From: Oikopleura dioica
Lineage: Eukaryota; Animalia; Chordata
DNA: 64,000 nucleotides
Direction: 5' to 3'
Assembly: GCA_907165135.1 (NCBI GenBank)
Contig: OU015568.1
Location: 6,014,001-6,078,000 of the forward strand
Positions 4,276-57,929 of the stretch are shown piece after piece. The stretch's first letter is position 1, and each line of letters opens with the position of its first letter. The translations under genes and the position numbers were made by a program. Below the pieces are notes generated by a model. The model was not told the origin of the DNA. It saw only the letters and a list, made by a program, of their open reading frames with translations, and did not search any database.

Positions 4276-5439
4276 TTATCACTTCCGGTGACAAAAAGGG
4301 ACTCTCTGCCGCTTGAATTCGGCTTTCTATTTTAGAATAACTGAGTCAGGGTCATTCAAAAGCTTTTTAAAGCTTTTTTCCGAATGATTCCCCCATTTTT
4401 TAAAAGAGCTCGTTCCAAGGATCAGGAATCGTAGTGGATCATTTTTGGATGAAGAAGAAACATTCCGAGTGCACTTCAACGACTCTCAATTCCATCTTTG
4501 GCATTCTAAAAACAATATTTTCAAAAACTTTCTCGAAAGTTCATTCTTCGTTCATTTCCGCTTCTTCTTCAGAACCGTCAGAAATCTCGATAAGGGAGTC
4601 TTCGTCCGAGTCTTGCTCCGACTCCGAGTCTGAGTTTGGAATGATCGCCCGCGAAGAAGACTCTTTTTCGAGGAAGGGCGGCGGACTGTGATTATTTTGG
4701 AATCGGCCTCGCTTTTCGAGCTCTTCTGAAAACTATTTCATAAAAATTTCATAGCAGAATTCGAACCTGTTTCGTGGAAGGAGTCGCGTCTCTTGATCAA
4801 ATTAACTTCCTTCATCAGCATTTTTCTTTCTGTTTTCCGATTTCGTGGCCGACCATGCTCTGCGCCTTGCTGTTGCCGTCGAAAAAGATCGTCGTCCCGA
4901 GCGTTCTTTCGTAGTTTCCTTTGCAAAAAATTATGTTGACTTGCTTTTCTCTGCTTCCTAAAGCTAAAATGTTTCGCTCCGCGCGCGGACCAATCAGCGC
5001 GCGCGGAGATTCCAAAAGCGAGAAAAAAGAGAAAAGCCGAAAAATGGTGCTAAGGGATGAAAATGAAGAAAACAGTGAACTAGAGAACAAGAAATAAAAA
5101 GAAGGGGTTTTCTTCACTGATTATTTTTGATCTGCACTCGATTGAATGTGAAATTACTGTAGCAAGCTAACTGAAGCGATCTTTAGAATAAGGCCCAATC
5201 GGCCATTTGTCTGATGAGCGGCTGAGATGAGCGTGGCTAATCTCGTGAATGACTTCTTCAGGGCTGAAATGGAGGGGATCGCGAGCTAATCGACAACAAC
5301 GACGAGAAAGGAACTCCAAGGAAAGACTCCTCGAAAAATCTAGCGCAACCGTTTCTTCCCCTCTCGCAAGCCAAGAAATACCAACTCGTAAAACAGCTGT
5401 TTCAGTCTTCGCAATCGTCGTCCGTCAAAAACATTCCGC

Positions 5440-7050
5440 TGGAGAAACGATTGTTGTAATTGGAGCTGGACCATCAGGAATTTCTACAGCCAGACAGTTT
5501 CATTATTTTGGATTCAATGTGAAGATTCTAGAGGCGAGGAAGAGGATAGGAGGACGAGTTCATGTTTGGGCACCTTAGGTTCGTTTGAGTGAAAAAGCTC
5601 ACTTATCGTCCATTTTAAGGTAGCTGTAGGAGCAATGGTCATCAACGGCCGCCAAAACAACCCTATCATCACCATGAGTCGTCAAATCTACCACGATGTC
5701 CACATCCTCGGAAGCCAATGCGGCCTTTTGTCAAATCCGAATCGATGGCTCGTGGACCAGACTTGAGAATGGAGCATCATTTCAACACGATTTTGGACAT
5801 TTTATCCGACTGGAGATTAGACAAGAAAAAGGACATTCCACTCATCGTCGCTCACAAAGAATGCGTCAGCCAAAGCGCGGAAAGATACTCAAAAACAGAA
5901 ATGAAACTGCTCGACCTCCACATCAACAACTTGGAATACGCCTGTGGAGCGAGCCTTTCTAGCGTTTCAGCGCTCAATTGGGACCAGAACGAGCGTTTTC
6001 CGCAATTTGGCAGGGATCATGCGATCGTGACATACGGATTTTCTGATGTTTTGGAAGAATTGTCGAAACCGCTGAATACAGAGTTTGAAATTTTTCGGTT
6101 TACCGGTGGCGAGCATTGATCATTCTGGGGAAAAGGTGGTCGTCGAAACGACTCATCGGGAGAAAATTGAGGCGGATAGGATCGGATACAGAATACAATT
6201 TTCTAAAAAGGTTGAAATAAGACTTTTGTATCCATTTCAAAAGTTCTTCGTGTCAATCCCACTCATGCTCGCTCTCATGAAAAAGAAAATCATCAAATTC
6301 ACCCCCGACTTATCTCCGCGAAAATGGCGCGCTGTAGAAAACATCGGCGCCGGCCTGATAGAATAATGCCTCCTCCGCTTCGATTCAAAATGGTGGAGTT
6401 ACATGATCGGTGGCGCTGATTTCTTTGGCTCCATCAGGCGTCGACGCTGATGATGAACACGATACGTCGGGGATTTTTAATGTGTTCTACGATATTCCAT
6501 CGGCTGAGAGTGATCATTTTACGCTCATGTCGATCGCAGCTGGAGCTTCGCTTGATATTTATCATTCGATGAGTGATAAACAGCTCGTTTCCAGTGCGAT
6601 GGCGACGCTTCAAGGCAAGAGTCAATTAACAAGCTCCTTTTTACTTGAATTGTCGCCATTTTGTGACTCTTAAAAAAGAAATCTTCAAAGAAAACACGAG
6701 CCCAGAGCCCCTGAGCTTCCACATTACACGCTGAGGAAAAGAAGAATACTCCCATATGAGTTATTCTTTTATCAAACTCGGTTCAACCGGAAAAGACTAC
6801 GACAAAATGGCGGAACCAGCTTCCGATCGATTATTTTTCGATGGAGAAGCCACCAATCGGTACGTTTAAGCGCATCCCTCTATAAAAAATGTTTGATAGG
6901 TATTTCCCACATACAGTGACAGGAGTGACAGTCCCTACTTGTCCGGAGTTCGCGAAGCAGCGAGAATTTTCAAGCTAGAACACAAGAAACTCAACCCTGA
7001 TTCGAAATTCTACGGCGACTCGATTTTCGAACAAACTTCTCTTCATCCCC
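5440..7050 (+). pseudogene. KDM1B: Lysine-specific demethylase LSD2 amine-oxidase domain, 5'-truncated and disabled
   Basis: VIGAGPSG...LEARKRIGGRV, NLEYACGASLSSVSALNWDQNE, GAGLIE*, GEATNR.YFPHTVTG, LSGVREA. TAA at 6364-6366, TGA at 6732-6734 (conserved W), 8-nt insertion at 6926-6933. No SWIRM/zf-CW region seen upstream. Confidence 0.9.
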
Positions 7051-9147: not shown

Positions 9148-9685
9148 TTCAGCTTTTGACGACGAACTAATCAACCCAACGAGTAAAAAAGCAGTCTTCG
9201 TGTTCGAGCAAGTTGTCCCAGGATTAAAGACGAACGACAAATGCCAAGCCACATTTAACGTAACTACAGCTGAATTTAACAAGTCCTAAAAAGCTTTTTA
9301 AGGATGTCGCCTGGGAAGTTGCCGGAAAGGGCTTTGTCACCTCCGCCAATTTGACTAATGTTCAAGTCAAATAAGCGATCTGAAGAAAGACCGTCGATTC
9401 ACTAGGCTGCTACTCAAAATACTTGATAGGGACAATTTGAAATTAATGATAATCACCTTTCTACTTTAAGAATTTTGATGAATCGAATCGTTTTTCGCCG
9501 AATCGTTCCTTTTGCTAGTTTATCCTCGATCCAGGTAAAAAGAACGATTGGATTCGAGGTGATTTTAAAGCGATTGAAAGCTCTTCTGGAACGAGAAGGA
9601 ATCGAGAAATGTGTTGGCGAAAGATAGAAGCTACATAATCGAAGATTCCTCTGGAACGATTGAATATTGAAACTCGTACAAGAAA

Positions 9686-10330
9686 ATGCGATTATTTGGG
9701 TATTTCGGCTGTCCTTACTGCGCCAATGTAAGGGCCTATGTTAAATTTCGGGGAATCGATAACAAAGACGTCGAAGTCAGCATTGGCAAGCCAGAGCTGA
9801 AGGGTGTCATTGAAAACTACTTACAAGGTAAATTGCTTGTTCCTTTTGGCAAAGAATAGTCATTTTTAGTGCCCGTCCTCGCCTTCTACAACAACAGCAG
9901 TAGCGAGCCCGACGCAGTAGTGAAGGACTCCGGAGCGATCGTCTCGACTCTGGAGCAAGTGCTCCGATTAGTGGCCGAGCCGATGAGCGAAATCGCCAAA
10001 TAATACTTCGACGAAAAGGGTAAATTCATCAAGAGCAAGGTGCCGATCCTGACGAAAGATGGACAGATCCAGACAGTAAATTCGTTCAAGACGGAATTCT
10101 ATATATCGAAGCTTTTGCAGTAATCAACTTGACTGAAGGGACGAGCGCTTGGGAGCAGTACGAACAGAGTCCCGAGCTGATGCAGTGGTACTACTCAGTC
10201 CAGCACGCGCTCGACACTCATCAGGGCATGCTCTAAGCACTGGCCCCACTGAATCACTTTTAGACTTGAAAACCGTCCAAACTTCATTCTTCAAAAGATA
10301 ACTAACCAAGGAATCAAGGCCCAAGCTTGT
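9686..10330 (+). pseudogene. Glutaredoxin/GST-N fold protein, PTGES2 (mPGES-2)-like, left copy
   Basis: LFGYFGCPYCANVRAY...VEV...VPVL...VKDSGAIVSTL. In-frame TAA at 10001-10003, shared with the right copy. Confidence 0.7.
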
Positions 10331-10367
10331 GAAATTACTAGATGTTTTCATTCGTCTTCATTTTAGA

Positions 10368-11377
10368 ATGTCAAGCAATGTCACAAAAATCGTTGAAGAA
10401 AACAAGAAAAGCAGACACTACAGTCTTTCTCTCAGCGACAAGAGCATCACCCAACTGACGCAGATTTCTTCCGACTTCAGCCAACTGCAGCACCTCTCCG
10501 AGCTCATTCTCGCGCACAACGGCCTCAAACAGCTCGCTGCTTCGATCACAAACTTAAAGAATCTCAAACTGCTCAACTGCTTCAACAATGAGCTCGTCGA
10601 GCTTCCCGGAAACTTGTCGGAGGTGAATTCAAGAGCGCGATTCTTTTCTAGAAGCCCTTGTTTTAGCTGCAAGAGCTGAGTAATCTCAATTTGGGAATGA
10701 ACAAGCTTCAGCGCCTGCCGAACAGCTTCCACAAACTCGCCAAGCTCGAAATACTCGACTTGACGTAAAACAACTTCAACGAAACAGTTTGCGAGCTCCT
10801 TTCTAAGGTAACTCTCAGTCAGTCGCGTTTTTCCTATTTTTGTAGTCGCTGCGCGCGTTGTACGTTTCCGACAACGACTTCCACAATCTTCCTTCAAAAG
10901 TGGCCCAATTTAAGAGACTTCAAATTCTTTGCGCAAGAGATAACGAGATAACGCTCATTCCGCCGGAAATCGCACTAATGGACAATTTGACAGAGCTTCA
11001 TTTACAGGTACTTGATAACTTCGTTTAGAATCGTATTTCATTTGGATCTTGCAGGGCAATTTGCTGAGTCTACTTCCGCCGCAGCTTCCAGTGCTCGTCG
11101 GGAAGAAGCTCAAAATTCTGAGAGTGGAGAGGAACTAGTTCGTCCGACCGATCGAAGAAAACAGGAAAAAGGCCAACAAGCGCTGTAGATTATCTCCGCT
11201 CCGACCGTAAGACAGCTCTTCTTGATAGGCTTCCTTTGAGGCTCAAAGTTTGAGCGCAATTCAGAGTACTGCATCTTCTACAACCGCGAAGGAGGCGACC
11301 AGAACGCGAAGCCCTCTGCCGAGCGGCGCAAAGAGCGGGAGAAGAAGCGGCAAGTCACCCGCCCAGTCCAGGCTTGA
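10368..11377 (+). pseudogene. RSU1: Ras suppressor protein 1 (LRR), left copy
   Basis: LSELILAHNGL...LNCFNNELVELP...LNLGMNKL...LEILDLT*NN...LRALYVSDNDF...ELHLQGN. TAA at 10766-10768 (shared with the right copy) and TAG at 11136-11138 (left only). Confidence 0.88.
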
Positions 11378-11520
11378 TCTGATTCTGTACCTTTTTTGCA
11401 TGTTCTGTCTGGCAGCACTTCCAATATCCACCAGCGCTACTTTCATCGTCATCAAAAACTCCCTTCAGTGCACTGACCTCTCTCTCTTCTACGCTTGATC
11501 ATTCTAACTGGCCAATTTAA

Positions 11521-12195
11521 GGGGGTAGTCCTCGCTTTTGAAAAATCGGAATTTTCAAATTTTCTTTGCAAATTCTGAAAACTCGTTAGAAGAGCTAAAA
11601 ACTTTGTGTTGATCATTTTTTCAAAATATAAGAGGAAAAAACCCAAAATCGCACTTGAAAAATGAGATTTTGATGTAAAATTTCAAAAACTCGAAATTTT
11701 TTGCCAATTTTATCCATAGATATAGCTTTATTTCGATTTTAAATTACCTCTAGATAATAAAGATAATAAATAAAATGTCTATTATTATGCTAATTTAGTA
11801 TAAATCATCCTTAAAAACTTATTTTTTCAAGATTTTGAGACCCAACCTTTGATTGATGGCATTACATTATGACTTTTCGGAATTTTTTAATTTCCCTGAA
11901 TTCAAACCTAGACGAAGGTATGAACTTTCAAAAAATTAATAAGTTTAAATTTTTGAAACATCCTCTTGATTTTAGGCGCGTTTAGAAAAAGGCCAAAATG
12001 GCGATTTTGCCCGGGCTAGGTTCTATTATCGCCCTCTAACTCCTTAAGCGGGCGAATAAAATTTTTTCCGTGAATTCAAACTTTCATCAGGGTTCGACCT
12101 TTCTACTCATATAGTTTTTATCCCTTAACCCCACCGCAAATTTGTGGGAGCGCTGTTCAAAAAGAGCCGAGATCGCAAAAGCAGGGACTACCTCC
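11521..12195. mobile_element. Non-autonomous TTAA-targeting DNA transposon (675 bp, GG...CC termini, Kolobok-like)
   Basis: TTAA at 11517-11520 and 12196-12199. TIRs gggggtagtcctcgcttttg / caaaagcagggactacctcc. Empty single TTAA at 22193-22196 in the paralogous copy. Confidence 0.9.
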
Positions 12196-12319
12196 TTAAG
12201 GAACTCCCGTTGAAACTGGTCCACTTTTGAAAGGTTGCTGGGAAGTTCCTTAATTGGCAAATGGTTCCTTTTCTTCTAATAAATTCGGTTTCTTCAAAAT
12301 ATTTTTTATTCGTATTTTC

Positions 12320-13140
12320 AGAATTGGCGATTGAAATAAGCCATCCCTTTTGTTTTTACGAATATTGAGAATGATTACTAAAGGAGGAATCAAACGAGGA
12401 ATTTACGGGTGTATGGCGCCCAGGTTATGCGGCCGTCCTTGAGTTCCTGAAAGACATGGCCAGCGCGAAGGAAGACAAAGACTCGGCCTTCCGGTCGGTA
12501 ATGTCGATGGACAAGTCAGCGTTTAGCCGAAACGATCGGAACTATGAGAACCTCTCGCAAAACAGTGTAACAGTTACTTCTATCTCGTCGAGTAGATCGC
12601 GGCCGATCGACGCCGAGAGAATTAACGCAGGCTTCGTTGTCAACTTCAAAAAGAAATACTCTATCTAGGTCACTATTTTCTGCACAAAGAATTATCCAAA
12701 CTTGTTTTCAGTACAACTGCGAAAGCAACGGGCTCTGGCGGCTACTTGAACGTCTCTCAAGCGGGTCTCATTCGAGAAACTCTTTTCGCTATGGAAAACA
12801 TCCCCGGCCTCTTCATTTGCTACGACGACAACGTCAATTCACTTTACAGATACCGACTCAAGGAGAAATGACAGAGTAGACAGTCGCGATCGATCAGATG
12901 TGGAGTCGCTGGGCGCGTTGGGCTTTCACGTTCGCGAAATCAGCGCCTTTATCGCGCAGCACGAGAAGCAGGAAGGATGATTGGAAGCGCTGGTCAGCAG
13001 AATTCGAGCTGGGACTTTTCCAAGTTTATGCGGCGGAGTATGATGGCAAAAAGACCAAAAAAGAGGACTTGCGAAATTGATGCTTCCGAAGCACGAGAAT
13101 AGACAACTTTAACCGCTGCTGTTTAAGATTTCCAGTATGA
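12320..13140 (+). pseudogene. TUBGCP3: Gamma-tubulin complex component 3 (GCP3)-like N-terminal fragment, left copy with internal deletion
   Basis: Same sequence as the right copy (see 20945-22060), lacking a 298-bp segment; ends shortly before the satellite. Confidence 0.6.
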
Positions 13141-13294
13141 CTAAATTATAAACACCATAACAGTGTTTTCGGCTTGGTCTACGGGAGTTTTTCTGAAAAC
13201 GGGTGTGGGTGGGGATGGGGACAGGCAAAGTCCTCATGTCTTATTATTTGGCGGGAGACTCTGTCTGTCTGCGATCAGGCAGGCTCCCTTTAAT

Positions 13295-15612
13295 GTTATG
13301 CTTGTAGGGTTATGCTTGTAGAGGGCTCAAGTTAGTCTTAGAGCGTGGGCGCGACTAGGGTTATGCTTGTAGAGGGCTCAAGTTAGTCTTAGAGCGTGGG
13401 CGCGACTAGGGTTATGCTTGTAGAGGGCTCAAGTTAGTCTTAGAGCGTGGGCGCGACTAGGGTTATGCTTGTAGAGGGCTCAAGTTAGTCTTAGAGCGTG
13501 GGCGCGACTAGGGTTATGCTTGTAGAGGGCTCAAGTTAGTCTTAGAGCGTGGGCGCGACTAGGGTTATGCTTGTAGAGGGCTCAAGTTAGTCTTAGAGCG
13601 TGGGCGCGACTAGGGTTATGCTTGTAGAGGGCTCAAGTTAGTCTTAGAGCGTGGGCGCGACTAGGGTTATGCTTGTAGAGGGCTCAAGTTAGTCTTAGAG
13701 CGTGGGCGCGACTAGGGTTATGCTTGTAGAGGGCTCAAGTTAGTCTTAGAGCGTGGGCGCGACTAGGGTTATGCTTGTAGAGGGCTCAAGTTAGTCTTAG
13801 AGCGTGGGCGCGACTAGGGTTATGCTTGTAGAGGGCTCAAGTTAGTCTTAGAGCGTGGGCGCGACTAGGGTTATGCTTGTAGAGGGCTCAAGTTAGTCTT
13901 AGAGCGTGGGCGCGACTAGGGTTATGCTTGTAGAGGGCTCAAGTTAGTCTTAGAGCGTGGGCGCGACTAGGGTTATGCTTGTAGAGGGCTCAAGTTAGTC
14001 TTAGAGCGTGGGCGCGACTAGGGTTATGCTTGTAGAGGGCTCAAGTTAGTCTTAGAGCGTGGGCGCGACTAGGGTTATGCTTGTAGAGGGCTCAAGTTAG
14101 TCTTAGAGCGTGGGCGCGACTAGGGTTATGCTTGTAGAGGGCTCAAGTTAGTCTTAGAGCGTGGGCGCGACTAGGGTTATGCTTGTAGAGGGCTCAAGTT
14201 AGTCTTAGAGCGTGGGCGCGACTAGGGTTATGCTTGTAGAGGGCTCAAGTTAGTCTTAGAGCGTGGGCGCGACTAGGGTTATGCTTGTAGAGGGCTCAAG
14301 TTAGCGCGACTAGGGTTAGCTTGTAGAGGGCTCAAGTTAGTCTTAGAGCGTGGGCGCGACTAGGGTTAGAGGGCTCAAGTTAGTCTTAGAGCGTGGGCGC
14401 GACTAGGGTTATGCTTGTAGAGGGCTCAAGTTAGTCTTAGAGCGTGGGCGCGACTAGGGTTATGCTTGTAGAGGGCTCAAGTTAGTCTTAGAGCGTGGGC
14501 GCGACTAGGGTTATGCTTGTAGAGGGCTCAAGTTAGTCTTAGAGCGTGGGCGCGACTAGGGTTATGCTTGTAGAGGGCTCAAGTTAGTCTTAGAGCGTGG
14601 GCGCGACTAGGGTTATGCTTGTAGAGGGCTCAAGTTAGTCTTAGAGCGTGGGCGCGACTAGGGTTATGCTTAGGGTTAGTTAGGGTTCAAGTTAGTCTTA
14701 GTTAGGGTTAGGGTTAGGACTAGGGTTAGGGTTAGGGTTAGTTAGGGTTCAAGTTAGTCTTAGAGCGTGGGCGCGACTAGGGTTATGCTTGTAGAGGGCT
14801 CAAGTTAGTCTTAGAGCGTGGGCGCGACTAGGGTTATGCTTGTAGAGGGCTCAAGTTAGTCTTAGAGCGTGGGCGCGACTAGGGTTATGCTTGTAGAGGG
14901 CTCAAGTTAGTCTTAGAGCGTGGGCGCGACTAGGGTTATGCTTGTAGAGGGCTCAAGTTAGTCTTAGAGCGTGGGCGCGACTAGGGTTATGCTTGTAGAG
15001 GGCTCAAGTTAGTCTTAGAGCGTGGGCGCGACTAGGGTTATGCTTGTAGAGGGCTCAAGTTAGTCTTAGAGCGTGGGCGCGACTAGGGTTATGCTTGTAG
15101 AGGGCTCAAGTTAGTCTTAGAGCGTGGGCGCGACTAGGGTTATGCTTGTAGAGGGCTCAAGTTAGTCTTAGAGCGTGGGCGCGACTAGGGTTATGCTTGT
15201 AGAGGGCTCAAGTTAGTCTTAGAGCGTGGGCGCGACTAGGGTTATGCTTGTAGAGGGCTCAAGTTAGTCTTAGAGCGTGGGCGCGACTAGGGTTATGCTT
15301 GTAGAGGGCTCAAGTTAGTCTTAGAGCGTGGGCGCGACTAGGGTTATGCTTGTAGAGGGCTCAAGTTAGTCTTAGAGCGTGGGCGCGACTAGGGTTATGC
15401 TTGTAGAGGGCTCAAGTTAGTCTTAGAGCGTGGGCGCGACTAGGGTTATGCTTGTAGAGGGCTCAAGTTAGTCTTAGAGCGTGGGCGCGACTAGGGTTAT
15501 GCTTGTAGAGGGCTCAAGTTAGTCTTAGAGCGTGGGCGCGACTAGGGTTATGCTTGTAGAGGGCTCAAGTTAGTCTTAGAGCGTGGGCGCGACTAGGGTT
15601 ATGCTTGTAGAG
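13295..15612 (+). repeat. 51-bp telomere-associated satellite, about 45 units: GAGGGCTCAAGTTAGTCTTAGAGCGTGGGCGCGACTAGGGTTATGCTTGTA
   Basis: Period 51 measured (13321 to 13372). Unit count from length/period. Variant units at about 14300-14375 and 14670-14750. Confidence 0.97.
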
Positions 15613-15624
15613 GGTTAGGGTTAG
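15611..15624 (+). repeat. Start of a (TTAGGG)n telomeric tract at the contig end
   Basis: agggttagggttag directly before the gap. Confidence 0.8.
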
Positions 15625-16124
15625 NNNNNNNNNNNNNNNNNNNNNNNNNNNNNNNNNNNNNNNNNNNNNNNNNNNNNNNNNNNNNNNNNNNNNNNNNNNN
15701 NNNNNNNNNNNNNNNNNNNNNNNNNNNNNNNNNNNNNNNNNNNNNNNNNNNNNNNNNNNNNNNNNNNNNNNNNNNNNNNNNNNNNNNNNNNNNNNNNNNN
15801 NNNNNNNNNNNNNNNNNNNNNNNNNNNNNNNNNNNNNNNNNNNNNNNNNNNNNNNNNNNNNNNNNNNNNNNNNNNNNNNNNNNNNNNNNNNNNNNNNNNN
15901 NNNNNNNNNNNNNNNNNNNNNNNNNNNNNNNNNNNNNNNNNNNNNNNNNNNNNNNNNNNNNNNNNNNNNNNNNNNNNNNNNNNNNNNNNNNNNNNNNNNN
16001 NNNNNNNNNNNNNNNNNNNNNNNNNNNNNNNNNNNNNNNNNNNNNNNNNNNNNNNNNNNNNNNNNNNNNNNNNNNNNNNNNNNNNNNNNNNNNNNNNNNN
16101 NNNNNNNNNNNNNNNNNNNNNNNN
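15625..16124. other. Scaffold gap of exactly 500 N
   Basis: Run of N of round-number length. Confidence 1.
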
Positions 16125-16362
16125 TAACCCTAACTCCTAACCCTAACCCTAACCCTAACCCTAACCCTAACCCTAACCCTAACCCTAACCCTAACCCTAA
16201 CCCTAACCCTAACCCTAACAACCTAACCCTAACCTAACCTAACCTAACCCCCTAACCTAACCCTAACCTAACCTAACCCTAACCCTAACCTAACCCTAAC
16301 CCTAACCTAACCCTAACCTAACCCTAACCTAACCCTAACCCTAACCCTAACCCTAACCCTAA
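16125..16362 (-). repeat. Telomeric tract (TTAGGG)n on the minus strand, with TTAGG variants
   Basis: (CCCTAA)n; CCTAA units interspersed at about 16220-16335. Confidence 0.97.
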
Positions 16363-19300
16363 GATTAACTTGGGCCCTCTGATAGCATAACCCTAATCAC
16401 GCGCCCACGCTCTAAGATTAACTTGGGCCCTCTGATAGCATAACCCTAATCACGCGCCCACGCTCTAAGATTAACTTGGGCCCTCTGATAGCATAACCCT
16501 AATCACGCGCCCACGCTCTAAGATTAACTTGGGCCCTCTGATAGCATAACCCTAATCACGCGCCCACGCTCTAAGATTAACTTGGGCCCTCTGATAGCAT
16601 AACCCTAATCACGCGCCCACGCTCTAAGATTAACTTGGGCCCTCTGATAGCATAACCCTAATCACGCGCCCACGCTCTAAGATTAACTTGGGCCCTCTGA
16701 TAGCATAACCCTAATCACGCGCCCACGCTCTAAGATTAACTTGGGCCCTCTGATAGCATAACCCTAATCACGCGCCCACGCTCTAAGATTAACTTGGGCC
16801 CTCTGATAGCATAACCCTAATCACGCGCCCACGCTCTAAGATTAACTTGGGCCCTCTGATAGCATAACCCTAATCACGCGCCCACGCTCTAAGATTAACT
16901 TGGGCCCTCTGATAGCATAACCCTAATCACGCGCCCACGCTCTAAGATTAACTTGGGCCCTCTGATAGCATAACCCTAATCACGCGCCCACGCTCTAAGA
17001 TTAACTTGGGCCCTCTGATAGCATAACCCTAATCACGCGCCCACGCTCTAAGATTAACTTGGGCCCTCTGATAGCATAACCCTAATCACGCGCCCACGCT
17101 CTAAGATTAACTTGGGCCCTCTGATAGCATAACCCTAATCACGCGCCCACGCTCTAAGATTAACTTGGGCCCTCTGATAGCATAACCCTAATCACGCGCC
17201 CACGCTCTAAGATTAACTTGGGCCCTCTGATAGCATAACCCTAATCACGCGCCCACGCTCTAAGATTAACTTGGGCCCTCTGATAGCATAACCCTAATCA
17301 CGCGCCCACGCTCTAAGATTAACTTGGGCCCTCTGATAGCATAACCCTAATCACGCGCCCACGCTCTAAGATTAACTTGGGCCCTCTGATAGCATAACCC
17401 TAATCACGCGCCCACGCTCTAAGATTAACTTGGGCCCTCTGATAGCATAACCCTAATCACGCGCCCACGCTCTAAGATTAACTTGGGCCCTCTGATAGCA
17501 TAACCCTAATCACGCGCCCACGCTCTAAGATTAACTTGGGCCCTCTGATAGCATAACCCTAATCACGCGCCCACGCTCTAAGATTAACTTGGGCCCTCTG
17601 ATAGCATAACCCTAATCACGCGCCCACGCTCTAAGATTAACTTGGGCCCTCTGATAGCATAACCCTAATCACGCGCCCACGCTCTAAGATTAACTTGGGC
17701 CCTCTGATAGCATAACCCTAATCACGCGCCCACGCTCTAAGATTAACTTGGGCCCTCTGATAGCATAACCCTAATCACGCGCCCACGCTCTAAGATTAAC
17801 TTGGGCCCTCTGATAGCATAACCCTAATCACGCGCCCACGCTCTAAGATTAACTTGGGCCCTCTGATAGCATAACCCTAATCACGCGCCCACGCTCTAAG
17901 ATTAACTTGGGCCCTCTGATAGCATAACCCTAATCACGCGCCCACGCTCTAAGATTAACTTGGGCCCTCTGATAGCATAACCCTAATCACGCGCCCACGC
18001 TCTAAGATTAACTTGGGCCCTCTGATAGCATAACCCTAATCACGCGCCCACGCTCTAAGATTAACTTGGGCCCTCTGATAGCATAACCCTAATCACGCGC
18101 CCACGCTCTAAGATTAACTTGGGCCCTCTGATAGCATAACCCTAATCACGCGCCCACGCTCTAAGATTAACTTGGGCCCTCTGATAGCATAACCCTAATC
18201 ACGCGCCCACGCTCTAAGATTAACTTGGGCCCTCTGATAGCATAACCCTAATCACGCGCCCACGCTCTAAGATTAACTTGGGCCCTCTGATAGCATAACC
18301 CTAATCACGCGCCCACGCTCTAAGATTAACTTGGGCCCTCTGATAGCATAACCCTAATCACGCGCCCACGCTCTAAGATTAACTTGGGCCCTCTGATAGC
18401 ATAACCCTAATCACGCGCCCACGCTCTAAGATTAACTTGGGCCCTCTGATAGCATAACCCTAATCACGCGCCCACGCTCTAAGATTAACTTGGGCCCTCT
18501 GATAGCATAACCCTAATCACGCGCCCACGCTCTAAGATTAACTTGGGCCCTCTGATAGCATAACCCTAATCACGCGCCCACGCTCTAAGATTAACTTGGG
18601 CCCTCTGATAGCATAACCCTAATCACGCGCCCACGCTCTAAGATTAACTTGGGCCCTCTGATAGCATAACCCTAATCACGCGCCCACGCTCTAAGATTAA
18701 CTTGGGCCCTCTGATAGCATAACCCTAATCACGCGCCCACGCTCTAAGATTAACTTGGGCCCTCTGATAGCATAACCCTAATCACGCGCCCACGCTCTAA
18801 GATTAACTTGGGCCCTCTGATAGCATAACCCTAATCACGCGCCCACGCTCTAAGATTAACTTGGGCCCTCTGATAGCATAACCCTAATCACGCGCCCACG
18901 CTCTAAGATTAACTTGGGCCCTCTGATAGCATAACCCTAATCACGCGCCCACGCTCTAAGATTAACTTGGGCCCTCTGATAGCATAACCCTAATCACGCG
19001 CCCACGCTCTAAGATTAACTTGGGCCCTCTGATAGCATAACCCTAATCACGCGCCCACGCTCTAAGATTAACTTGGGCCCTCTGATAGCATAACCCTAAT
19101 CACGCGCCCACGCTCTAAGATTAACTTGGGCCCTCTGATAGCATAACCCTAATCACGCGCCCACGCTCTAAGATTAACTTGGGCCCTCTGATAGCATAAC
19201 CCTAATCACGCGCCCACGCTCTAAGATTAACTTGGGCCCTCTGATAGCATAACCCTAATCACGCGCCCACGCTCTAAGATTAACTTGGGCCCTCTGATAG

Positions 19301-20790
19301 CATAACCCTAATCACGCGCCCACGCTCTAAGATTAACTTGGGCCCTCTGATAGCATAACCCTAATCACGCGCCCACGCTCTAAGATTAACTTGGGCCCTC
19401 TGATAGCATAACCCTAATCACGCGCCCACGCTCTAAGATTAACTTGGGCCCTCTGATAGCATAACCCTAATCACGCGCCCACGCTCTAAGATTAACTTGG
19501 GCCCTCTGATAGCATAACCCTAATCACGCGCCCACGCTCTAAGATTAACTTGGGCCCTCTGATAGCATAACCCTAATCACGCGCCCACGCTCTAAGATTA
19601 ACTTGGGCCCTCTGATAGCATAACCCTAATCACGCGCCCACGCTCTAAGATTAACTTGGGCCCTCTGATAGCATAACCCTAATCACGCGCCCACGCTCTA
19701 AGATTAACTTGGGCCCTCTGATAGCATAACCCTAATCACGCGCCCACGCTCTAAGATTAACTTGGGCCCTCTGATAGCATAACCCTAATCACGCGCCCAC
19801 GCTCTAAGATTAACTTGGGCCCTCTGATAGCATAACCCTAATCACGCGCCCACGCTCTAAGATTAACTTGGGCCCTCTGATAGCATAACCCTAATCACGC
19901 GCCCACGCTCTAAGATTAACTTGGGCCCTCTGATAGCATAACCCTAATCACGCGCCCACGCTCTAAGATTAACTTGGGCCCTCTGATAGCATAACCCTAA
20001 TCACGCGCCCACGCTCTAAGATTAACTTGGGCCCTCTGATAGCATAACCCTAATCACGCGCCCACGCTCTAAGATTAACTTGGGCCCTCTGATAGCATAA
20101 CCCTAATCACGCGCCCACGCTCTAAGATTAACTTGGGCCCTCTGATAGCATAACCCTAATCACGCGCCCACGCTCTAAGATTAACTTGGGCCCTCTGATA
20201 GCATAACCCTAATCACGCGCCCACGCTCTAAGATTAACTTGGGCCCTCTGATAGCATAACCCTAATCACGCGCCCACGCTCTAAGATTAACTTGGGCCCT
20301 CTGATAGCATAACCCTAATCACGCGCCCACGCTCTAAGATTAACTTGGGCCCTCTGATAGCATAACCCTAATCACGCGCCCACGCTCTAAGATTAACTTG
20401 GGCCCTCTGATAGCATAACCCTAATCACGCGCCCACGCTCTAAGATTAACTTGGGCCCTCTGATAGCATAACCCTAATCACGCGCCCACGCTCTAAGATT
20501 AACTTGGGCCCTCTGATAGCATAACCCTAATCACGCGCCCACGCTCTAAGATTAACTTGGGCCCTCTGATAGCATAACCCTAATCACGCGCCCACGCTCT
20601 AAGATTAACTTGGGCCCTCTGATAGCATAACCCTAATCACGCGCCCACGCTCTAAGATTAACTTGGGCCCTCTGATAGCATAACCCTAATCACGCGCCCA
20701 CGCTCTAAGATTAACTTGGGCCCTCTGATAGCATAACCCTAATCACGCGCCCACGCTCTAAGATTAACTTGGGCCCTCTGATAGCATAAC
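16362..20790 (-). repeat. 53-bp telomere-associated satellite, about 83 units (plus strand GATAGCATAACCCTAATCACGCGCCCACGCTCTAAGATTAACTTGGGCCCTCT)
   Basis: Period 53 measured (16381, 16434, 16487). Homologous to the 51-bp unit with 6 substitutions and a 2-nt indel. Confidence 0.97.
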
Positions 20791-20944
20791 ATTAAAGGGA
20801 GCCTGCCTGATCGCAGACAGACAGAGTCTCCCGCCAAATAATGAGACATCATGACTTTGCCTGTCCCCATCCCCACCCACACCCGTTTTCAGAAAAACTC
20901 CCGTAGACCAAGCCGAAAACACTGTTATGGTGTTTATAATTTAG

Positions 20945-22060
20945 TCATTCTGGAAATCTTAAACAGCAGCGGTTAAAGTTGTCTATTCTCGTGCTTCGGA
21001 AGCATCGATTTCGCAAGTCTTCTTTCTTGGTCTTTTTGCCATCACACTCCGCCGCATCAACTTGGAAAAGTCCCAGCTCGAATAGTTCATCGCAGAGTGG
21101 ACAAGCCATCGCGTCTGAAAAGGCGATAAGTAAAGGTTTTGTCATTTTTCTACTTACCAGGCTATTCCTTCGGACAAGCTGAATTGCTTGAAACATCCTG
21201 AACTTCTTTCTACACAAAATAGGCTCATTAGTAGGCTTTTTTCTCCTTGCTTTTTTCGTTGACAAGAATTACGTCCTCCGAGTCGCTGTCTTAAAGCAGA
21301 TCGAATTCGCTCTTTAGATAAATCAAAGTGAGCTCCGGCAGGATTCTGAAATTGGAGAGGGCGTGGCGATACTCGTCGAATTCTGCTGACCAGCGCGCTT
21401 CCAATCATCCCAAAGCCTTCCTGCTTCTCGTGCTGCGCGATAAAGGCGCTGATTTCGCGAACGTGAAAGCCCAACGCGCCCAGCGACTCCACATCTGATC
21501 GATCGCGACTGTCTACTCTGTCATTTCTCCTTGAGTCGGTATCTGTAAAGTGAATTGACGTTATCGTCGTAGCATATGAAGGTGCCGGGGATGTTTTCCA
21601 TAGCGAAAAGAGTGTCTCGAATGAGATCCGGTTGAGAGACGTTCAAGTAGCCGCCAGAGCCCGTTGCTTTCGCAGGTGTACTGAAAACAAGTTTGGATAA
21701 TTCTTTGTGCAGAGAAAAGCGACCTTGATAGAGTATTTCTTTTGAAGTTGACAACGAAGCCTGCGTTAATTCTCTCGGCGTCGATCGGCCGCGATCTACT
21801 TGACGAGATAGAAGTAACCGTTACACTGTTTTGCGAGAGGTTCTCTTTGTTCCGATCGTTTCGGCTAAACGCTAACTTGTCCATCGACATGACAGACCGG
21901 AAGGCCGAGTCTTCGTCTTCCTTCGCGCTGTCCATGTCTTTCAGGAACTTAAGGACGGCCGCATAACCTGGGCGCCATACACCCGTTAATTCCTCGTTTG
22001 ATTCCTCCTTTAGTAATCATTCTCAATATTCGTAAAAACAAAAGGGATGGCTTATTTCAA
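20945..22060 (-). pseudogene. TUBGCP3: GCP3-like N-terminal fragment, right copy
   Basis: SQPDLIRDTLFAMENIPGTFI and ESLGALGFHVREISAFIAQHEKQEGFGMIGSALV resemble GCP3 (LVRDILYVFQGIDG; LSELGWLHNKI...FGLVGQSF). Contains stops and frameshifts. Confidence 0.65.
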
Positions 22061-22333
22061 TGGCCAATTCTGAAAATACGAATAAAAGAATATTTTGAAG
22101 AAACCGAATTTATTAAAAGAAAAGGAACCATTTGCCAATTAAGGAACTTCCCAGCAACCTTTCAAAAGTGGACCAGTTTCAACGGGAGTTCCTTAAATTG
22201 GCCAGTTAGAATGATCAAGCGTAGAAGAGAGAGGTCAGTGCACTGAAGGGAGTTTTTGATGACGATGAAAGTAGCGCTGGTGGATATTGGAAGTGCTGCC
22301 AGACAGAACATGCAAAAAAGGTACAGAATCAGA

Positions 22334-23345
22334 TCAAGCCTGGACTGGGCGGGTGACTTGCCGCTTCTTCTCCCGCTCTTTGCGCCGCTCGGCAGAGGGC
22401 TCCGCGTTCTGGTCGCCTCCTTCGCGGTTGTAGAAGATGCAGTACTCTGAATTGCGCTCAAACTTTGAGCCTCAAAGGAAGCCTATCAAGAAGAGCTGTC
22501 TTACGGTCGGAGCGGAGATAATCCATCAGCGCTTGTTGGCCTTTTTTCCTGTTTTCTTGGATCGGTCGGACGAAGTAGTTCCTCTTCACTCTCAGAATTT
22601 TGAGCTTCTTCCCGAATAGCACTGGAAGCTGCGGCGGAAGTAGACTCAGCAAATTGCCCTGCAAGATCCAAATGAAATACGATTCTAAACGATGAAATAA
22701 GGTTCCTGTAAATAAAGCTCTGTCAAATTGTCCATTATTGCGATTTCCGGCGGAATGAGCGTTATCTCGTTATCTCTTGCGAAAAGAATTTGAAGTCTCT
22801 TTAATTGGGCCACTTTTGAAGGAAGATGGTGGAAGTCGTTGTCGGAAACGTACAACGCGCGCAGCGACTACAAAAATAGGAAAAACGCGACTGACTGAGA
22901 GTTACCTTAGAAAGGAGCTCGCAAACTGTTTCGTTGAAGTTGTTTTACGTCAAGTCGAGTATTTCGAGCTTGGCGAGTTTGTGGAAGCTGTTCGGCAGGC
23001 GCTGAAGCTTGTTCATTCCCAAATTGAGATTACTCAGCTCTTGCAGCATAAACAAGGGCTTCTAGAAAAGAATCGCGCTCTTGAATTCACCTCCGACAAG
23101 TTTCCGGGAAGCTCGACGAGCTCATTGTTGAAGCAGTTGAGCAGTTTGAGATTCTTTAAGTTTGTGATCGAAGCAGCGAGCTGTTTGAGGCCGTTGTGCG
23201 CGAGAATGAGCTCGGAGAGGTGCTGCAGTTGGCTGAAGTCGGAAGAAATCTGCGTCAGTTGGGTGATGCTCTTGTCGCTGAGAGAAAGACTGTAGTGTCT
23301 GCTTTTCTTGTTTTCTTCAACGATTTTTGTGACATTGCTTGACAT
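22334..23345 (-). pseudogene. RSU1: RSU1, right copy
   Basis: Same LRR translation; shared TAA at 22945-22947; RNYF is intact where the left copy has RN*F. Confidence 0.88.
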
Positions 23346-23439
23346 TCTAAAATGAAGACGAATGATAACAGCTTCAAAGCTTGTAAAAATCAACCATCAC
23401 AGCATTCAAAACATCTAGTAATTTTACAAGCTTGGGCCT

Positions 23440-24076
23440 TGATTCCTTGGTTAGTTATCTTTTTGAAGAATAAAGTTTGGACGGTTTTTTAAGTCTTAAA
23501 GTGATTCAGTGGGGCCAGTGCTTAGAGCATGCCCTGATGAGTGTCGACCGCGTGCTGGACTGAGTAGTATCACTGCATCAGCTCGGGACTCTGTTCGTAC
23601 TGCTCCCAAGCGCTCGTCCCTTCCGTCAAGTTGATTACTGCAAAAGCTTCGATATATAGAATTCCGTCTTGAACGAATTTACTGTCTGGATCTGTCCATC
23701 TTTCGTCAGGATCGGTGTGCACCTTGCTCTTGATGAATTTGCCCTTTTCGTCGAAGTATTATTTGGCGATATCGCTCATCGGCTCGGCCACTCCTCGGAG
23801 CACTTGCTCCAGAGTCGAGACGATCGCTCCGGAGTCCTTCACTACTGCGTCGGGCTCGCTACTGCTGTTGTTGTAGAAGGCGAGAACGGGCACTAAAAAT
23901 GACTGTTCTTTGCCAAAAGGAACAAGTAATTTACCTTGTAAGTAGTTTTCAATGACACCCTTGAGCTCTGGCTTGCCAATGCTGACTTCGACGTCTTTGT
24001 TATCGATTCCCCGAAATTTAAGATAGGCCCTTACTTTGGCGCAGTAAGGACAGCCGAAATACCCAAATAATCGCAT
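23440..24076 (-). pseudogene. PTGES2-like, right copy
   Basis: MRLFGYFGCPYCAKVRAYLKFRG...; shared TAA at 23759-23761; extra 4-nt insertion near 23715. Confidence 0.7.
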
Positions 24077-24344
24077 TTTCTTGTACGAGTTTCAATATTC
24101 AATCGTTCCAGAGGAATCTTTGATTATGTAGCTTCTATCTTTCGCCAACACTTTTCTCGATTCCTTCTCGTTCCAGAAGACCTTTTAATCGCTTTAAAAT
24201 CACCTCGAATCCAATCGTTCTTTTTACCTGGATCGAGGATAAACTTGCAAAAGGAACGAGTCGGCGAAAAACGATTCGATTCATTGAAATTCTTAAAGTA
24301 GAAAGGTGATTATTATTAATTTCAAATTGTCCCTATCAAGTTCG

Positions 24345-50170: not shown

Positions 50171-51676
50171 GGTTCTGCTCGTAACGTTTTTACCAGTTAG
50201 AAAGATACAGTAATAACGAACGCTTATCATGTTATATTTTTTCCGCGGCAGTGACGCTTCGAAAAACTATAATTTACAAACTTATTCTTCGATACCGTAG
50301 TTTCGTTTTTATTCAATATCCACAAGGGCATTTCGCACAGTGACTTGTTGAAATATTACCAAATTGCCAAAAAACTTGCATCATTCCAGAAAGGGTTGAT
50401 TTTTTCCTAAAAGCTTCATCTTCTCACTCCTTGTTTTTCCACAGCTGTATTTTTCCTGTACCTCTTTTTCCACGAAGTAATCCAGCAAAAACAGGCCGTA
50501 TAACATCTTACTCAAAATAAAAAACACAAAATAAAAAATTCTCTATGCAAAGAAGACTACCTCTACAAACGTTTCCACATTTTTTTGACCAACAGAAATC
50601 AGAAATTTCAGCAAAATTGGGACTTTTTCGTCATTTTTCGTTAAAAAGTCCGATTTTCAAACGCGATTTTGAGGGTGTTAGAGTCGAGATAGACCCCCAA
50701 AAAAAGAAGCCTCAAAATCGTCTTTTGACCTATAGAATCCATTTCCGGGGTCAAAATTATGAGATTCCGAAAATAGATTTTTCGAAAATTGTTGACGGGG
50801 AGGTCCTTAATTGACGTCTAATCAACTTATTGAAAATAATTACGAAAAGAAACGGGAGTATGTCTTAATTGAAGCCATTTCCTAGAGCGAGTAAAAACCA
50901 AAAATCGTTTTTAGGAGGTATTACCTTAAAGCTCACCGCTGGTTAGCCATAATGACGTTGTGTAATTCGAACATTGCAGTTTTTTGAAGGTACTTAAAAA
51001 TGAGCTGGAGCTTACCTCACCTGTTTCCGGGCTGACCAGTTTAGAGGGACACACATTTTTAGACAAAAATCTTTTCCGACATAATGACAAAAAATTTGAA
51101 GATTTTAAATATTATCAGCCCCCTCCTATTTCCAGATACGTCGTTGAAATCATAGCCTCTATTTCTTTTTCTTCTTATTCTTCGGATCTTTGACGATGAT
51201 GAATCTATGTATTCTAATTTATTAAAATATGCAATGGCCTTAAAAAAAGTGTGTATGAAAAGATATGCTGCGTTTCTATCGTCACTTCCAATATCAATCA
51301 GAATAGCTGATTAGACTGTGGATTAGATTAAGCCACGGACGGCTTAACTCCTTTACCAGGAAAATAATTGCACAAGAACGAAAAATCACTGGCCGTCAAC
51401 AATAAGCCGTTCTATTGAAAATAAAGGGTCTGGAATTTGACTCTGGAAATGAACGATCCGCGCTCCGCAAGAACCTATTTCTCACGAGGCCGTAAAATCT
51501 GAACGGATCGAGATTTTTTCGAGATTTAAACAGATTCGGAAACCTCAAAGTCTCTTCTATAAACTGATCGAAAATTAAAACAATTTTCAAACAGGAACAA
51601 TGTGAAAAGTGCCAGTTTCTTTCAAATGACATTTTCTCCATAATTTCTCATCCAAATTTTTTGAAAATTAGACTGT

Positions 51677-51932
51677 TATTGGGATCTTAGATTCGTTAGA
51701 CTCCCTCGTCCCCTAAGGTCACTTGCTTATCTAGATCGAGCTTTGCTCGGTCGCCGCCGTGTATTTCTCTCCATTCGGTAATTCACGCAGTTCGTGAATT
51801 AACCTCTATTTTACTCCAGCTCGAAATACAGACGTCAAAGATACTTTACTCGTTTTCTTCACTCGTCCAGATATAGAGAGCAGGCAAACTACGCTAGAAG
51901 TGGGAGATTCAGCAGAAGCTAGGATCCCTTCA
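51677..51932 (+). repeat. 5' LTR of copy B (TATTGGG...CCCTTCA)
   Basis: Matches 57930-58185. Confidence 0.96.
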
Positions 51933-51933
51933 G

Positions 51934-51971
51934 TGGTGTCAGAAGCTAGGATCCCTTCAGTGGTATCAGAG
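51934..51971 (+). promoter_or_regulatory. Duplicated primer binding site (TGGTGTCAGAAG...TGGTATCAGAG)
   Basis: 27-nt tandem duplication of the PBS start plus LTR end (51933-51959), absent in copy A. Confidence 0.8.
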
Positions 51972-52475
51972 TAGTCCCGTTGGAGAAAAGGTAAATTTTC
52001 CGCCATCGACAACCGAAGTTTCGCAACTTGGACGCTGATTGGCCGTCAGCGGAGTCGAGGGGAACCGAATCACCAACCGCCACCGCGCCGCCGGAGAAAC
52101 TCCACTCAGAGAATTTTCCGCGCCGCACCACACCAACACCACCCCGAGCGAGCGCCACCACACGAGCGCCACCACGACCCACGCGCCGAAAGTCGCGCCC
52201 ACGCAACCACGCACGCACGCCGGGGAAAACCTAAAATACTGAGAAAAACATAATTCTTTCGCCACTTTTCACCAAAAATCGAGAGAAGTTTACGAAGAAT
52301 CGACCCTTGGACCAGACCTTGAAATTTCGACAATCGCTGGACAGAGAAATCGTCGGGCGTTTGCGCAAAAAGGCACCTCAGCTCATCATATTGCGACTTT
52401 TAGTCGCAGTATTTTCTGAGGGCCTGAAAGGTAATCCAAGGCCCATAAACCCTTACTGCCGATATATTTCGAGCT

Positions 52476-53461
52476 ATGGCGGCGAACAAATCACTGCTAG
52501 AAACCGTCACCGAAATAAGAAGCATAAACGATCGAGTAAACTACCTCGAAGAACAAGTGCGAAATGACGAATCACTAAAGCCAAGCCTAGAGCCCTTGAT
52601 CACAGAAAGCAGAGTAAAATTAGAACAGCTCAGTACAACGCTTCTTACCTGCGAGCTCGATCAAGGAAAAGACTCTACGAATGCGACAATGAGAGAAGAA
52701 GCATGGGTGGCCACTACCTGGTCTCGTCACGTCCAAGACTTGCCGAAGCTGGACGCCGCATGCAACACATCTTTCAACACCTTCTTGGGCAGAGCCGACA
52801 TTTATCACCGCGCCTACGTCCGCGACAGACCTTCACGTGAACAGCCTTTCATCGCAGCAGTGTACAGCCACTTCGACTTGAACATCGAACGCTCACTTGG
52901 AACCGAATTTCTGAATTGTCAAGACTGGAAATCGGCCAAGGCGCTGCTAGAGAAATCATTCGCCGCGAAGAGTCACTACTTACTGAAGCTAAGCGAAGTT
53001 TTCGACGTCGAATACGACCATTCGAAGCCGTTTGCACACTACACCGCCAACGTCTTGCAAAAGATGAACGAGGCGAAGCAAGCGACTTTGAACTCTTACC
53101 GACAAGAGAAGTCAGCCGACGCCGGGGTCGATGAAATATTTGACATATTCTCGACGATGATGCTGTACTTGAATCTTAGGAAAGAAGAACCAGACGTTTT
53201 CAACGCAATCCTTCCAAGCCTATCAAAAGTTTACGATATCAACGAACTCTGCCGTCTCGCCCAATCCACAAGACAGAATCGAGTTGACAGCGCGACCGTC
53301 TCCCAGCACTTCAACAGAAATAAGAACAAAAGAAGAAGAATGCTAAGCGCGCCAGCAACGATTCTAAGGATGGGAAAGACGATAAACAACCAGAATCCAA
53401 GAAGATAAATACGACTAAGAACGTTGAAGATTTCCAACCATTCGACGTTCACTTTTACACA
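52476..53461 (+). CDS. gag: Gag; 1-nt deletion in an A-run near 53330 relative to copy A
   Basis: 310-aa ORF; copy A has acaaaaagaag where copy B has acaaaagaag. Confidence 0.88.
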
Positions 53462-57622: not shown

Positions 57623-57923
57623 GCGCAAGTACTGCCCCACTCAGGTCCCCTATTCATCGACCGGGGCCTGAAAAGGTACGGAAATTATCACAGTTTACCG
57701 TCGCCGACGTATTTTGAGTTCTTCTACATGTGCAGCTACTCCTTCATGTCATCACCGCTCGGACATCACGAAAACTTCGCATCTGATTCAAGCTTTTTCC
57801 CAAAAAGGGTTTTTAACGCGAATCAGACTGCCTCGACGTTTCGAACCTGCCATGTTACTCATCTTACGCTTATACTCCTGCAAAAATCACACACTTTGGC
57901 CTTAGAGGACGTTTCAGTCTCAT

Positions 57924-57929
57924 GGGGGG
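57924..57929 (+). promoter_or_regulatory. Polypurine tract (GGGGGG) abutting the 3' LTR
   Basis: catGGGGGG|TATTGGG. Confidence 0.75.

Follow-up and report, generated by a model that had tools for sequence, protein, structure and literature searches.

The two satellite arrays that stand on either side of a placeholder gap on the PAR scaffold of the Oikopleura dioica OKI2018_I69 assembly are best explained as telomere-associated (subterminal) arrays on a duplicated end module, with one unit variant fixed in each array; we put the probability of this reading at about 0.75. The window, a stretch of 64,000 nucleotides (6.014-6.078 Mb of the scaffold), was analysed by TRF and by direct reading of the letters, and 64,281,565 bases of the genome, in 19 pieces, were searched for related sequences. 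Four assembled arrays were identified: one on each side of the gap, one at the chr1 short-arm end (contig C4) and one on contig C16. The arrays stand at contig ends, and the assembly places those ends at presumed centromere gaps.

In this reading, the end module combines a spacer-like flank, at least 3.3 kb long, with a satellite array that starts from a fixed junction and is followed by TTAGGG repeats. It was duplicated to the chr1 short-arm end and to the two PAR arm ends that border the gap; remnants without an array lie near the start of XSR and on the long-arm side of chr2. Local tandem turnover, through unequal sister-chromatid exchange, slippage or break-induced copying, could then have fixed one variant per array, which would account for arrays that are uniform inside and different between ends.

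Satellite arrays and their shared flank

To the left of the gap, a 51-bp satellite array of variant V1 was found at positions 13296 to 15614, with its G strand on the plus strand (45.4 copies by TRF, approximately 46 units); it was collinear with the first satellite block of C16. To the right, a 53-bp array of variant V3 extended from 16364 to 20789 with the C strand on the plus strand (83.6 copies, 100% matches). These arrays had been described in a first-pass annotation, which counted six substitutions and one 2-nt indel between their units and a single perfect TTAGGG in the right unit; all of this was confirmed, the TTAGGG lying inside TTAGGGTTA. A third variant, the 51-bp V2, is one substitution away from V1. 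In all four arrays, the unit strand richer in G (19 G versus 8 C) was the one that corresponded to the telomere G strand, in agreement with the first-pass view of tandem arrays beside telomere repeats.

The left copy of the shared end block, a spacer-like flank located by BLAST and by the inverted repeats I2, I3, I6-I9, I12 and I15, occupied positions 9421 to 13295 on the plus strand and ended in the anchor CCCTTTAATG (13286-13295, plus strand, by direct reading), directly before the array. The right copy was inverted, lying on the minus strand at 20790 to 24341, and started with CATTAAAGGG (20790-20799 as read on the plus strand), the reverse complement of the left anchor. The two flanks were inverted copies of each other over approximately 3.3 kb, with 2.45% substitutions. 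A dispersed-repeat insertion of about 690 bp was present at 11516-12205 in the left copy and absent from the other copies.

In the genome search, the left flank was matched by C16 (100%), by the sequence to the right of the gap (95-97%), by C4 (96-99%), and by further copies at C5:5,724,026-5,727,508 (80-96%) and C2:54,592-58,492 (90-91%). The flanks of the arrays were 95-99% alike over 3.3-6.5 kb. The shared block was found only at ends that face centromere gaps and at the XSR start. Pfam analysis of the open reading frames in the shared flank yielded nothing beyond a sub-threshold LRR match. No substitution was observed between C16 and the left side of the gap in 9,529 nt of flank; these two contigs are the same end assembled twice. 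The satellite family is carried by three physical ends.

All four arrays shared the proximal junction, ...CCCTTTAATG followed directly by TTATGC, with the flank ending in ...GGCTCCCTTTAATG before TTATGC. Both window arrays do start immediately after CCCTTTAATG, as the earlier suggestion of a shared anchor base had it, but this agreement is not an independent coincidence, since one duplicated flank of at least 3.3 kb underlies every array of the family and the common anchor base was inherited with it.

Array ends at presumed centromere gaps

The gap itself (500 N, 15625 to 16124) marks the presumed PAR centromere. Gaps in this assembly are "gaps of arbitrary size of 500 bp", the two arms show few mutual Hi-C contacts, and they were paired only through synteny to another strain, OdB3 (PMC8008620). 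What the window shows as a head-to-head arrangement is a product of scaffolding, in which a placeholder gap separates two contig ends. The two sides of the gap were not treated as continuous, as the 500-bp gap is arbitrary and C16 prolongs the left side but does not arrive at the right. The left contig ended in a TTAGGGTTAG stub (15615 to 15624, plus strand, by direct reading), which likely continues as in C16, with approximately 290 bp of TTAGGG, 13 V2 units and then TTAGGG up to the contig end. The right contig began with a telomere tract on the minus strand (16125 to 16363; about 40 TAACCC repeats as read on the plus strand, many of them 5-nt variants), the G strand of which runs towards the gap.

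It is an unusual point that these satellite-bearing ends face a presumed centromere; no centromere sequence has yet been described for O. dioica, and the pairing of its arms is provisional (PMC8008620, PMC7941098).

Of the six arm ends at "centromere" gaps, five carried end-oriented TTAGGG repeats. The repeats were present on the short-arm side of all three gaps and on the long-arm side at PAR and chr2. Match rates were 90-95% for gap-facing tracts and 93-98% for terminal tracts, a difference that may be sequencing noise. The wider count of telomere-bearing ends is a minimum, as the PAR end, the XSR end, the YSR end and several small scaffolds lie outside it. The identification of contig C13 as the missing chr1 long-arm telomere was not supported, its end matching the PAR-start subtelomere at 98.3%.

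This distribution of repeats, together with the confinement of the shared block to gap-facing ends and the XSR start, is compatible with a real internal structure, namely a head-to-head join at the PAR centromere that represents the scar of two fused telocentric chromosomes and has pericentromeric satellites beside it. The published karyotype of n = 3 and the three centromere clusters seen in Hi-C also agree with a fusion. We regard this explanation as possible but doubtful: no gap was crossed by a read or contig, and tracts of 0.06-1.2 kb should not halt contigs at a long-read coverage of approximately 250x. Furthermore, the regularity of the tracts was close to that of terminal ones, which would be surprising in an old scar, and C16 extended the left side and ended in TTAGGG without any CCCTAA.

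It is unlikely, but worth retaining, that the ends facing the three gaps are genuine capped ends, so that the arms would be separate telocentric chromosomes, each with telomere repeats at its two ends, or that the centromeres are bracketed by maintained inverted telomere arrays. These readings were kept because five of the six ends carry TTAGGG, because the arms have few Hi-C contacts with one another and were matched by synteny alone, and because the karyotype paper, which reported about six signals in metaphase cells and oocytes, also has a class of 12-14 signals without explanation. Under both of them, the 51/53-bp satellite and the shared block would constitute an end module of the centromere side, passed between ends that lie clustered in the nucleus.

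Uniformity and divergence of the unit variants

Each array was fixed for one unit variant, as had been noted earlier. The full units were identical in 39 of 42 cases in the left array, in 82 of 82 in the right array and in 68 of 68 in the chr1 array, and C16 was uniform as two blocks of 45 and 13 units; uniformity and unit counts were taken from the Nanopore assembly consensus, polished with Racon and Pilon. The description of both window arrays as nearly uniform was upheld, except that the left array had three irregular places. Two of these were units of 87 nt and 43 nt with internal deletions (14267 to 14391, plus strand), recognised in the unit catalogue and by comparison with C16; the third was a mosaic of satellite pieces and TTAGGG repeats (14659 to 14749, plus strand) within a 119-nt piece that replaced three regular units. 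All three were missing from the twin contig C16, and for this reason the units at 14267-14391 may be consensus errors.

The same discrepancy, in a pair of contigs with identical flanks, would be expected if the arrays were real but their uniformity, unit counts and sharp blocks had been made by assembly and polishing of heterogeneous molecules. Polishing by Racon and Pilon and the merging of haplotypes were reported for this assembly (PMC8008620), and the arrays were perfect next to noisy telomere tracts (90-97% matches). An origin of this kind is nonetheless improbable, as V1 and V2, only one base apart, stayed separate, even as two blocks within C16, three variants were kept in three arrays despite the expected cross-mapping of reads, and Nanopore coverage of the assembly was approximately 250x.

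The variants had also been called end-specific. This was true of V3, which occurred nowhere else in the genome, but V1 and V2 were each located in two assembled arrays: V1 in the left array and C16, and V2 in the outer block of C16 and in the array at the chr1 short-arm end. The GGGCCC sequence was counted 84 times in the right array, with an ApaI site in each unit, and was not found in the left array. Digestion with ApaI, which had been put forward as cutting only the 53-bp array, does not separate the arrays in this way, because V2 carries the site as well.

V3 differed from V1 at 6 of 51 unit sites, which was above the flank rate (binomial P = 0.0015), and its divergence from the chr1 array also exceeded that of the flanks (P = 0.006). 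In contrast, V1 and V2 differed at 1 of 51 sites compared with 1.8% in the flanks, which was no excess (P = 0.6). The claim that the arrays diverge faster than the flanking DNA can thus be kept for V3 and not for the two 51-bp variants. The V3 result is in keeping with turnover across the whole array, through copying or unequal exchange. The differing fixed variants could also represent the sorting of old variants and not fast change; a homologue embedded in the chr2 satellite has some states in common with V1 and others with V3. Related units were present in a 254-bp satellite at the chr2 gap and in a 72-bp satellite at the chr1 end. A metagenome scan with a degenerate 49-nt unit pattern returned 0 matches. 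Single-strand folding of unit dimers revealed no strong structure (z between -0.8 and -2.1), and a hairpin-driven mechanism was dropped on that basis.

Telomere junctions and comparison with known systems

All four arrays passed straight into TTAGGG repeats, with nothing between. The distal exit of all 51-bp arrays was GTAGAGGG followed directly by TTAGGG, and the 53-bp array met its telomere tract where AATCTTAG abuts GGTTAGGG; the matches between array and telomere at these points were AGGG and TTAG, respectively. In C16, the satellite was re-entered at GTTAG followed by TCTTAGAGCG. Short matches at the junctions are what extension of a broken array by telomerase, or by telomere-primed copying, would be expected to leave, and the arrays may have acquired their caps in this way. 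A search of the genome for the telomerase RBD family gave no match, and its controls gave none either.

The unit had been interpreted as telomere-derived, for which there was weak support when k-mer coverage and longest match were compared with shuffled sequences (p = 0.003-0.19 overall). Telomere 4-mers covered 21 of the 51-53 unit bases (p = 0.005-0.012 against mononucleotide and 0.017-0.057 against dinucleotide shuffles), coverage by telomere 5-mers gave p = 0.013-0.19, and the longest exact match between unit and telomere was 8-9 nt (p = 0.003-0.047). The perfect TTAGGG of V3 is unpolarised, as the chr2 homologue has CTAGGG and another subunit has GATTAGGG.

The first-pass annotation had further argued that the arrays are far longer than the TTAGGG tracts and suggest a recombination-based end-buffering layer alongside telomerase, which would amount to ALT-like copying of satellite blocks to ends. 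As an argument for a general layer this fails, because the short tracts that it invoked are cut at contig ends and because the outer telomeres of this assembly comprise 2.4-4.8 kb of TTAGGG and are free of the satellite. Although the order of blocks in C16, with junction microhomologies of 4-5 nt and 13 V2 units identical to the chr1 array unit, is the trace expected if a shortened telomere had been extended by copying another end, and the chr1 telomere tract contains satellite fragments, such buffering is very doubtful, given that the C16 order is a single instance and at most one event, possibly an assembly join, that the satellite is present at three physical ends only, and that the internal TTAGGG patch of the window was not reproduced in C16.

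TALT-type templates are known from C. elegans and mouse cells that survive without telomerase. The Oikopleura satellite resembles them in that a satellite block bounded by telomere repeats would, as the C16 order suggests, have been copied to another end. It differs in that only one event can be proposed, in a wild-type animal whose canonical telomeres are long, and there is no evidence of amplification at all ends. Vertebrate Robertsonian-type fusions leave pericentromeric interstitial telomere sequences. The window is similar to such remnants in having telomere repeats head to head, with satellites next to them, where a centromere is presumed; it differs in that the tracts do not look clearly degenerate and a placeholder gap lies between them.

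The potato satellites CL14 and CL34 are also joined to telomere repeats at some ends, and are lineage-specific and fast-evolving (Torres et al. 2011, PMC3276127). Their monomers are 182 and 339 bp and their arrays reach 1-3 Mb, whereas the arrays described here are 2.3-4.4 kb long, with much shorter units and a shared flank.

The closest likeness, under the preferred reading of subterminal arrays on a duplicated end module, is to the Sultan arrays of Chlamydomonas reinhardtii, which have a shared Spacer (Chaux-Jukic et al. 2021, PMC8287924). In both systems the array adjoins the telomere, the spacer is common to several ends, the junction is conserved, a telomere-like motif in the unit gives a seamless transition to the telomere, and copies are more alike within than between arrays; non-terminal telomere tracts embedded in arrays, with possible counterparts here, are known from related algae (PMC8287924). 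The O. dioica units, at 51-53 bp, are unrelated in sequence to Sultan, their host is an animal, the family is found at 3 physical ends compared with 27 of 34 in Chlamydomonas, and its ends have been placed at presumed centromeres. In practical terms, scaffold ends that were put at the presumed centromeres of O. dioica resemble chromosome ends in the reference assembly. With its per-array fixation of units and its telomere junctions at microhomologies, the satellite would provide an animal example, from the smallest free-living chordate genome, of the array-on-shared-spacer ends known in green algae and plants.

Satellite arrays on either side of the gap

Repeat finding, direct reading and a unit catalogue bore out the first-pass annotation's observation of two arrays. 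The left anchor, the short sequence CCCTTTAATG at 13286-13295, directly preceded a 51-bp array (13296-15614) in which 39 of 42 full units were identical. On the right side, a telomere tract of about 40 TAACCC repeats (16125-16363) was followed by a 53-bp array that ended at 20789, directly before CATTAAAGGG, and whose full units were all identical (82/82). The near uniformity of both arrays was thus confirmed, as was the difference of six substitutions and a 2-nt indel between the two units. ApaI, which had been proposed to cut only the 53-bp array, had 84 sites in that array and none in the left array, but a 51-bp variant found elsewhere, V2, also has an ApaI site.

The N run at 15625-16124 was exactly 500 long, and telomere repeats aimed into it from either side. 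Genome-wide analysis covered the 64,281,565 bases and 19 pieces of OKI2018_I69, of which five are large scaffolds: PAR (17,092,476 bases), XSR (12,959,145), YSR (2,916,375), chr1 (14,533,022) and chr2 (16,158,756) (cf. Table S1, Bliznina et al. 2021, PMC8008620). Assembly gaps are arbitrary 500-bp placeholders, and the pairing of megabase scaffolds as chromosome arms relied solely on synteny to the Bergen physical map (PMC8008620); therefore, neither continuity nor register across 15625-16124 can be assumed. Hi-C contacts between arms are few (PMC8008620).

Judged by its sequence, the small scaffold C16 is the end on the left of the gap assembled a second time, since it differed from the left flank by 0 substitutions and 19 indels over 9.5 kb, shared its 690-bp insertion and carried a collinear array. 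Beyond the point at which the PAR contig stopped, C16 continued with approximately 290 bp of TTAGGG, 13 further satellite units and then TTAGGG up to the contig end; CCCTAA and the 53-bp unit were never reached. A TTAGGG mosaic (14659-14749) and two deleted units (14267-14391) in the window were not trusted as biology because C16 had neither.

The window also contained pieces of eukaryotic genes (MCM and PI-PLC) and a Ty3/gypsy element (51516-58594). The element is bordered by repeats on both sides, and its ORFs for RT, RNase H and integrase lie at 53462-56832. An inverted partial second copy at 1-1973 was 99-100% identical to 51676-53674, which indicates that the insertion or duplication was very recent.

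Unit variants and the shared flank

The satellite family was found in only four assembled places genome-wide: the left and right sides of the window gap, chr1 (C4) 5,187,591-5,191,134, and C16. Three unit variants were catalogued. V1 (51 bp) made up the left array of the window and, in C16, the first 45 full units. V2 (51 bp) differs from V1 in having GGGCCC, and hence the ApaI site, in place of GGGCTC; all 68 full units at the chr1 short-arm end were V2, as were the 13 outer ones in C16. V3 (53 bp) occurred in the right array of the window only. Contrary to what had been suggested, the variants were therefore not strictly end-specific; V3 alone was confined to one place.

All four arrays began at the identical base after a common flank, in agreement with the proposed common anchor. 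The flanks were copies of one block, with 2.45% substitutions between PAR-left and PAR-right (3.3 kb aligned), 2.26% between PAR-right and chr1 (3.2 kb) and 1.76% between PAR-left and chr1 (4.7 kb); since every array adjoins such a copy, the anchor was inherited as part of an end module that had been duplicated. Partial copies that lacked an array were located on the right of the chr2 gap, 16.5 kb from it and oriented towards it, and at 54-58 kb of XSR.

Within the shared block, an ORF at 10329-10679 (+) gave sub-threshold leucine-rich-repeat matches (best E 6e-5, under Pfam cut-offs) and could belong, as an exon, to a gene that was duplicated together with the block; Pfam analysis of the shared-flank ORFs yielded nothing else. 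Among the shared end blocks, a dispersed repeat of approximately 690 bp (11516-12205) was inserted only in the PAR-left/C16 copy. It had more than 25 copies on chr1, chr2, PAR and XSR (68-94% identity) and is probably a non-autonomous mobile element.

Divergence of arrays beyond that of their flanks, which had been suggested as faster change, was seen for V3, with 6 of 51 sites different from V1 (P = 0.0015) and 5 of 51 from V2 (P = 0.006), above the flank-rate prediction, but not for V1 and V2, which differed at the flank rate (1 of 51; P = 0.6). The excess fits per-array fixation of different variants and need not imply faster mutation. A 53-nt homologue inside the 254-bp satellite unit at the chr2 gap shared its length and TCAG with V3, and GTTAGT and CTAGGG with V1; thus, both variant lineages may be old.

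Telomere repeats, junctions and ancestry of the unit

End-oriented telomere repeats flanked all three placeholder gaps at the presumed centromeres. The PAR gap had TTAGGG on its short-arm side and CCCTAA on its long-arm side; the chr2 gap had the 254-bp satellite followed by ten TTAGGG repeats on the short-arm side, and 212 CCCTAA repeats followed by an unrelated 53-bp satellite on the long-arm side. At the chr1 gap the short-arm side had the V2 array and then 560 bp of TTAGGG, and the long-arm side was without telomere repeat. These repeats may mark true chromosome ends or telomeres that became fused at the centromeres. For most of the megabase scaffolds, a single telomeric region is reported (PMC8008620); n = 3 is reported as the most parsimonious karyotype, although one class of nuclei showed 12-14 signals, for which no explanation was given (PMC7941098).

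The chr2 gap region (C5 5,702,000-5,711,999; gap at 5010-5509 of that stretch) showed the same head-to-head telomere arrangement as PAR, with at least 25 copies of the 254-bp satellite on the left and at least 61 of the unrelated satellite on the right (99% matches in each). In the chr1 gap region (C4 5,186,000-5,195,999; gap at 5658-6157 of that stretch), the 560-bp tract included satellite fragments and the long-arm side opened with a 166-bp repeat in three copies; elsewhere, this repeat lies next to the outer telomeres of both PAR and chr1, and on the small scaffolds C13 and C14. At the chr1 outer end (last 10 kb of C4), a 500-N gap preceded a 72-bp satellite (54.7 copies, 97%), after which the telomere repeat ran for only about 0.5 kb. 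The 72-bp unit and one half of the 254-bp unit at chr2 were homologous, so the G-rich end satellites form a wider family. C13 (110.6 kb) started with 5.2 kb of CCCTAA, and its other end matched the PAR-start subtelomere in inverse orientation (98.3% identity). Both of its ends thus resemble chromosome ends; the scaffold is possibly a haplotig chimera or, alternatively, a small end fragment that remained unplaced.

A recombination-based end-buffering layer had been proposed because the arrays exceeded the assembled telomere tracts in length. This argument fails, since the tracts in the window (10 and 239 bp) were stumps at contig ends and the outer telomeres on PAR, chr1 and chr2, which had no copy of this satellite, measured 2.4-4.8 kb except at the chr1 outer end (0.5 kb). 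The sole hint of recombinational copying was the order V1, TTAGGG, V2, TTAGGG in C16, which may have arisen by a single copying event or through a join made in assembly.

Every 51-bp array left the unit at GTAGAGGG|TTAGGG and the 53-bp array at AATCTTAG|GGTTAGGG; in C16 the satellite was re-entered at GTTAG|TCTTAGAGCG. These junctions were 4-5-nt matches to the telomere repeat, as would be expected if telomerase had primed on a broken array or if a telomere had primed copying from another end. A telomerase family search of the genome gave no match, and the controls were likewise silent.

On the telomere G strand the unit was G-rich (19 G vs 8 C), with one exact telomere match of 8-9 nt and three TTAG motifs. 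Comparison with shuffled sequences gave p values of 0.005-0.012 (mononucleotide) and 0.017-0.057 (dinucleotide) for telomere 4-mer coverage, 0.013-0.19 for the 5-mer measure and 0.003-0.047 for the longest exact match. The telomere-derived origin previously assigned to the unit is plausible but only weakly supported (p 0.003-0.19). Single-strand folding of unit dimers revealed no strong structure.

Comparison with known systems

No paper describing the O. dioica units was found in a literature search, and a metagenome scan for the satellite unit gave no match. Satellites abutting the telomere are likewise known in potato (PMC3276127). The closest published match to these end arrays is the Chlamydomonas subtelomere, where Sultan arrays adjoin the telomere and are anchored, with a conserved junction, on a Spacer common to several ends; a telomere-like border gives a seamless transition, similarity is higher within than between arrays, and in related algae telomere tracts are embedded inside arrays (PMC8287924).
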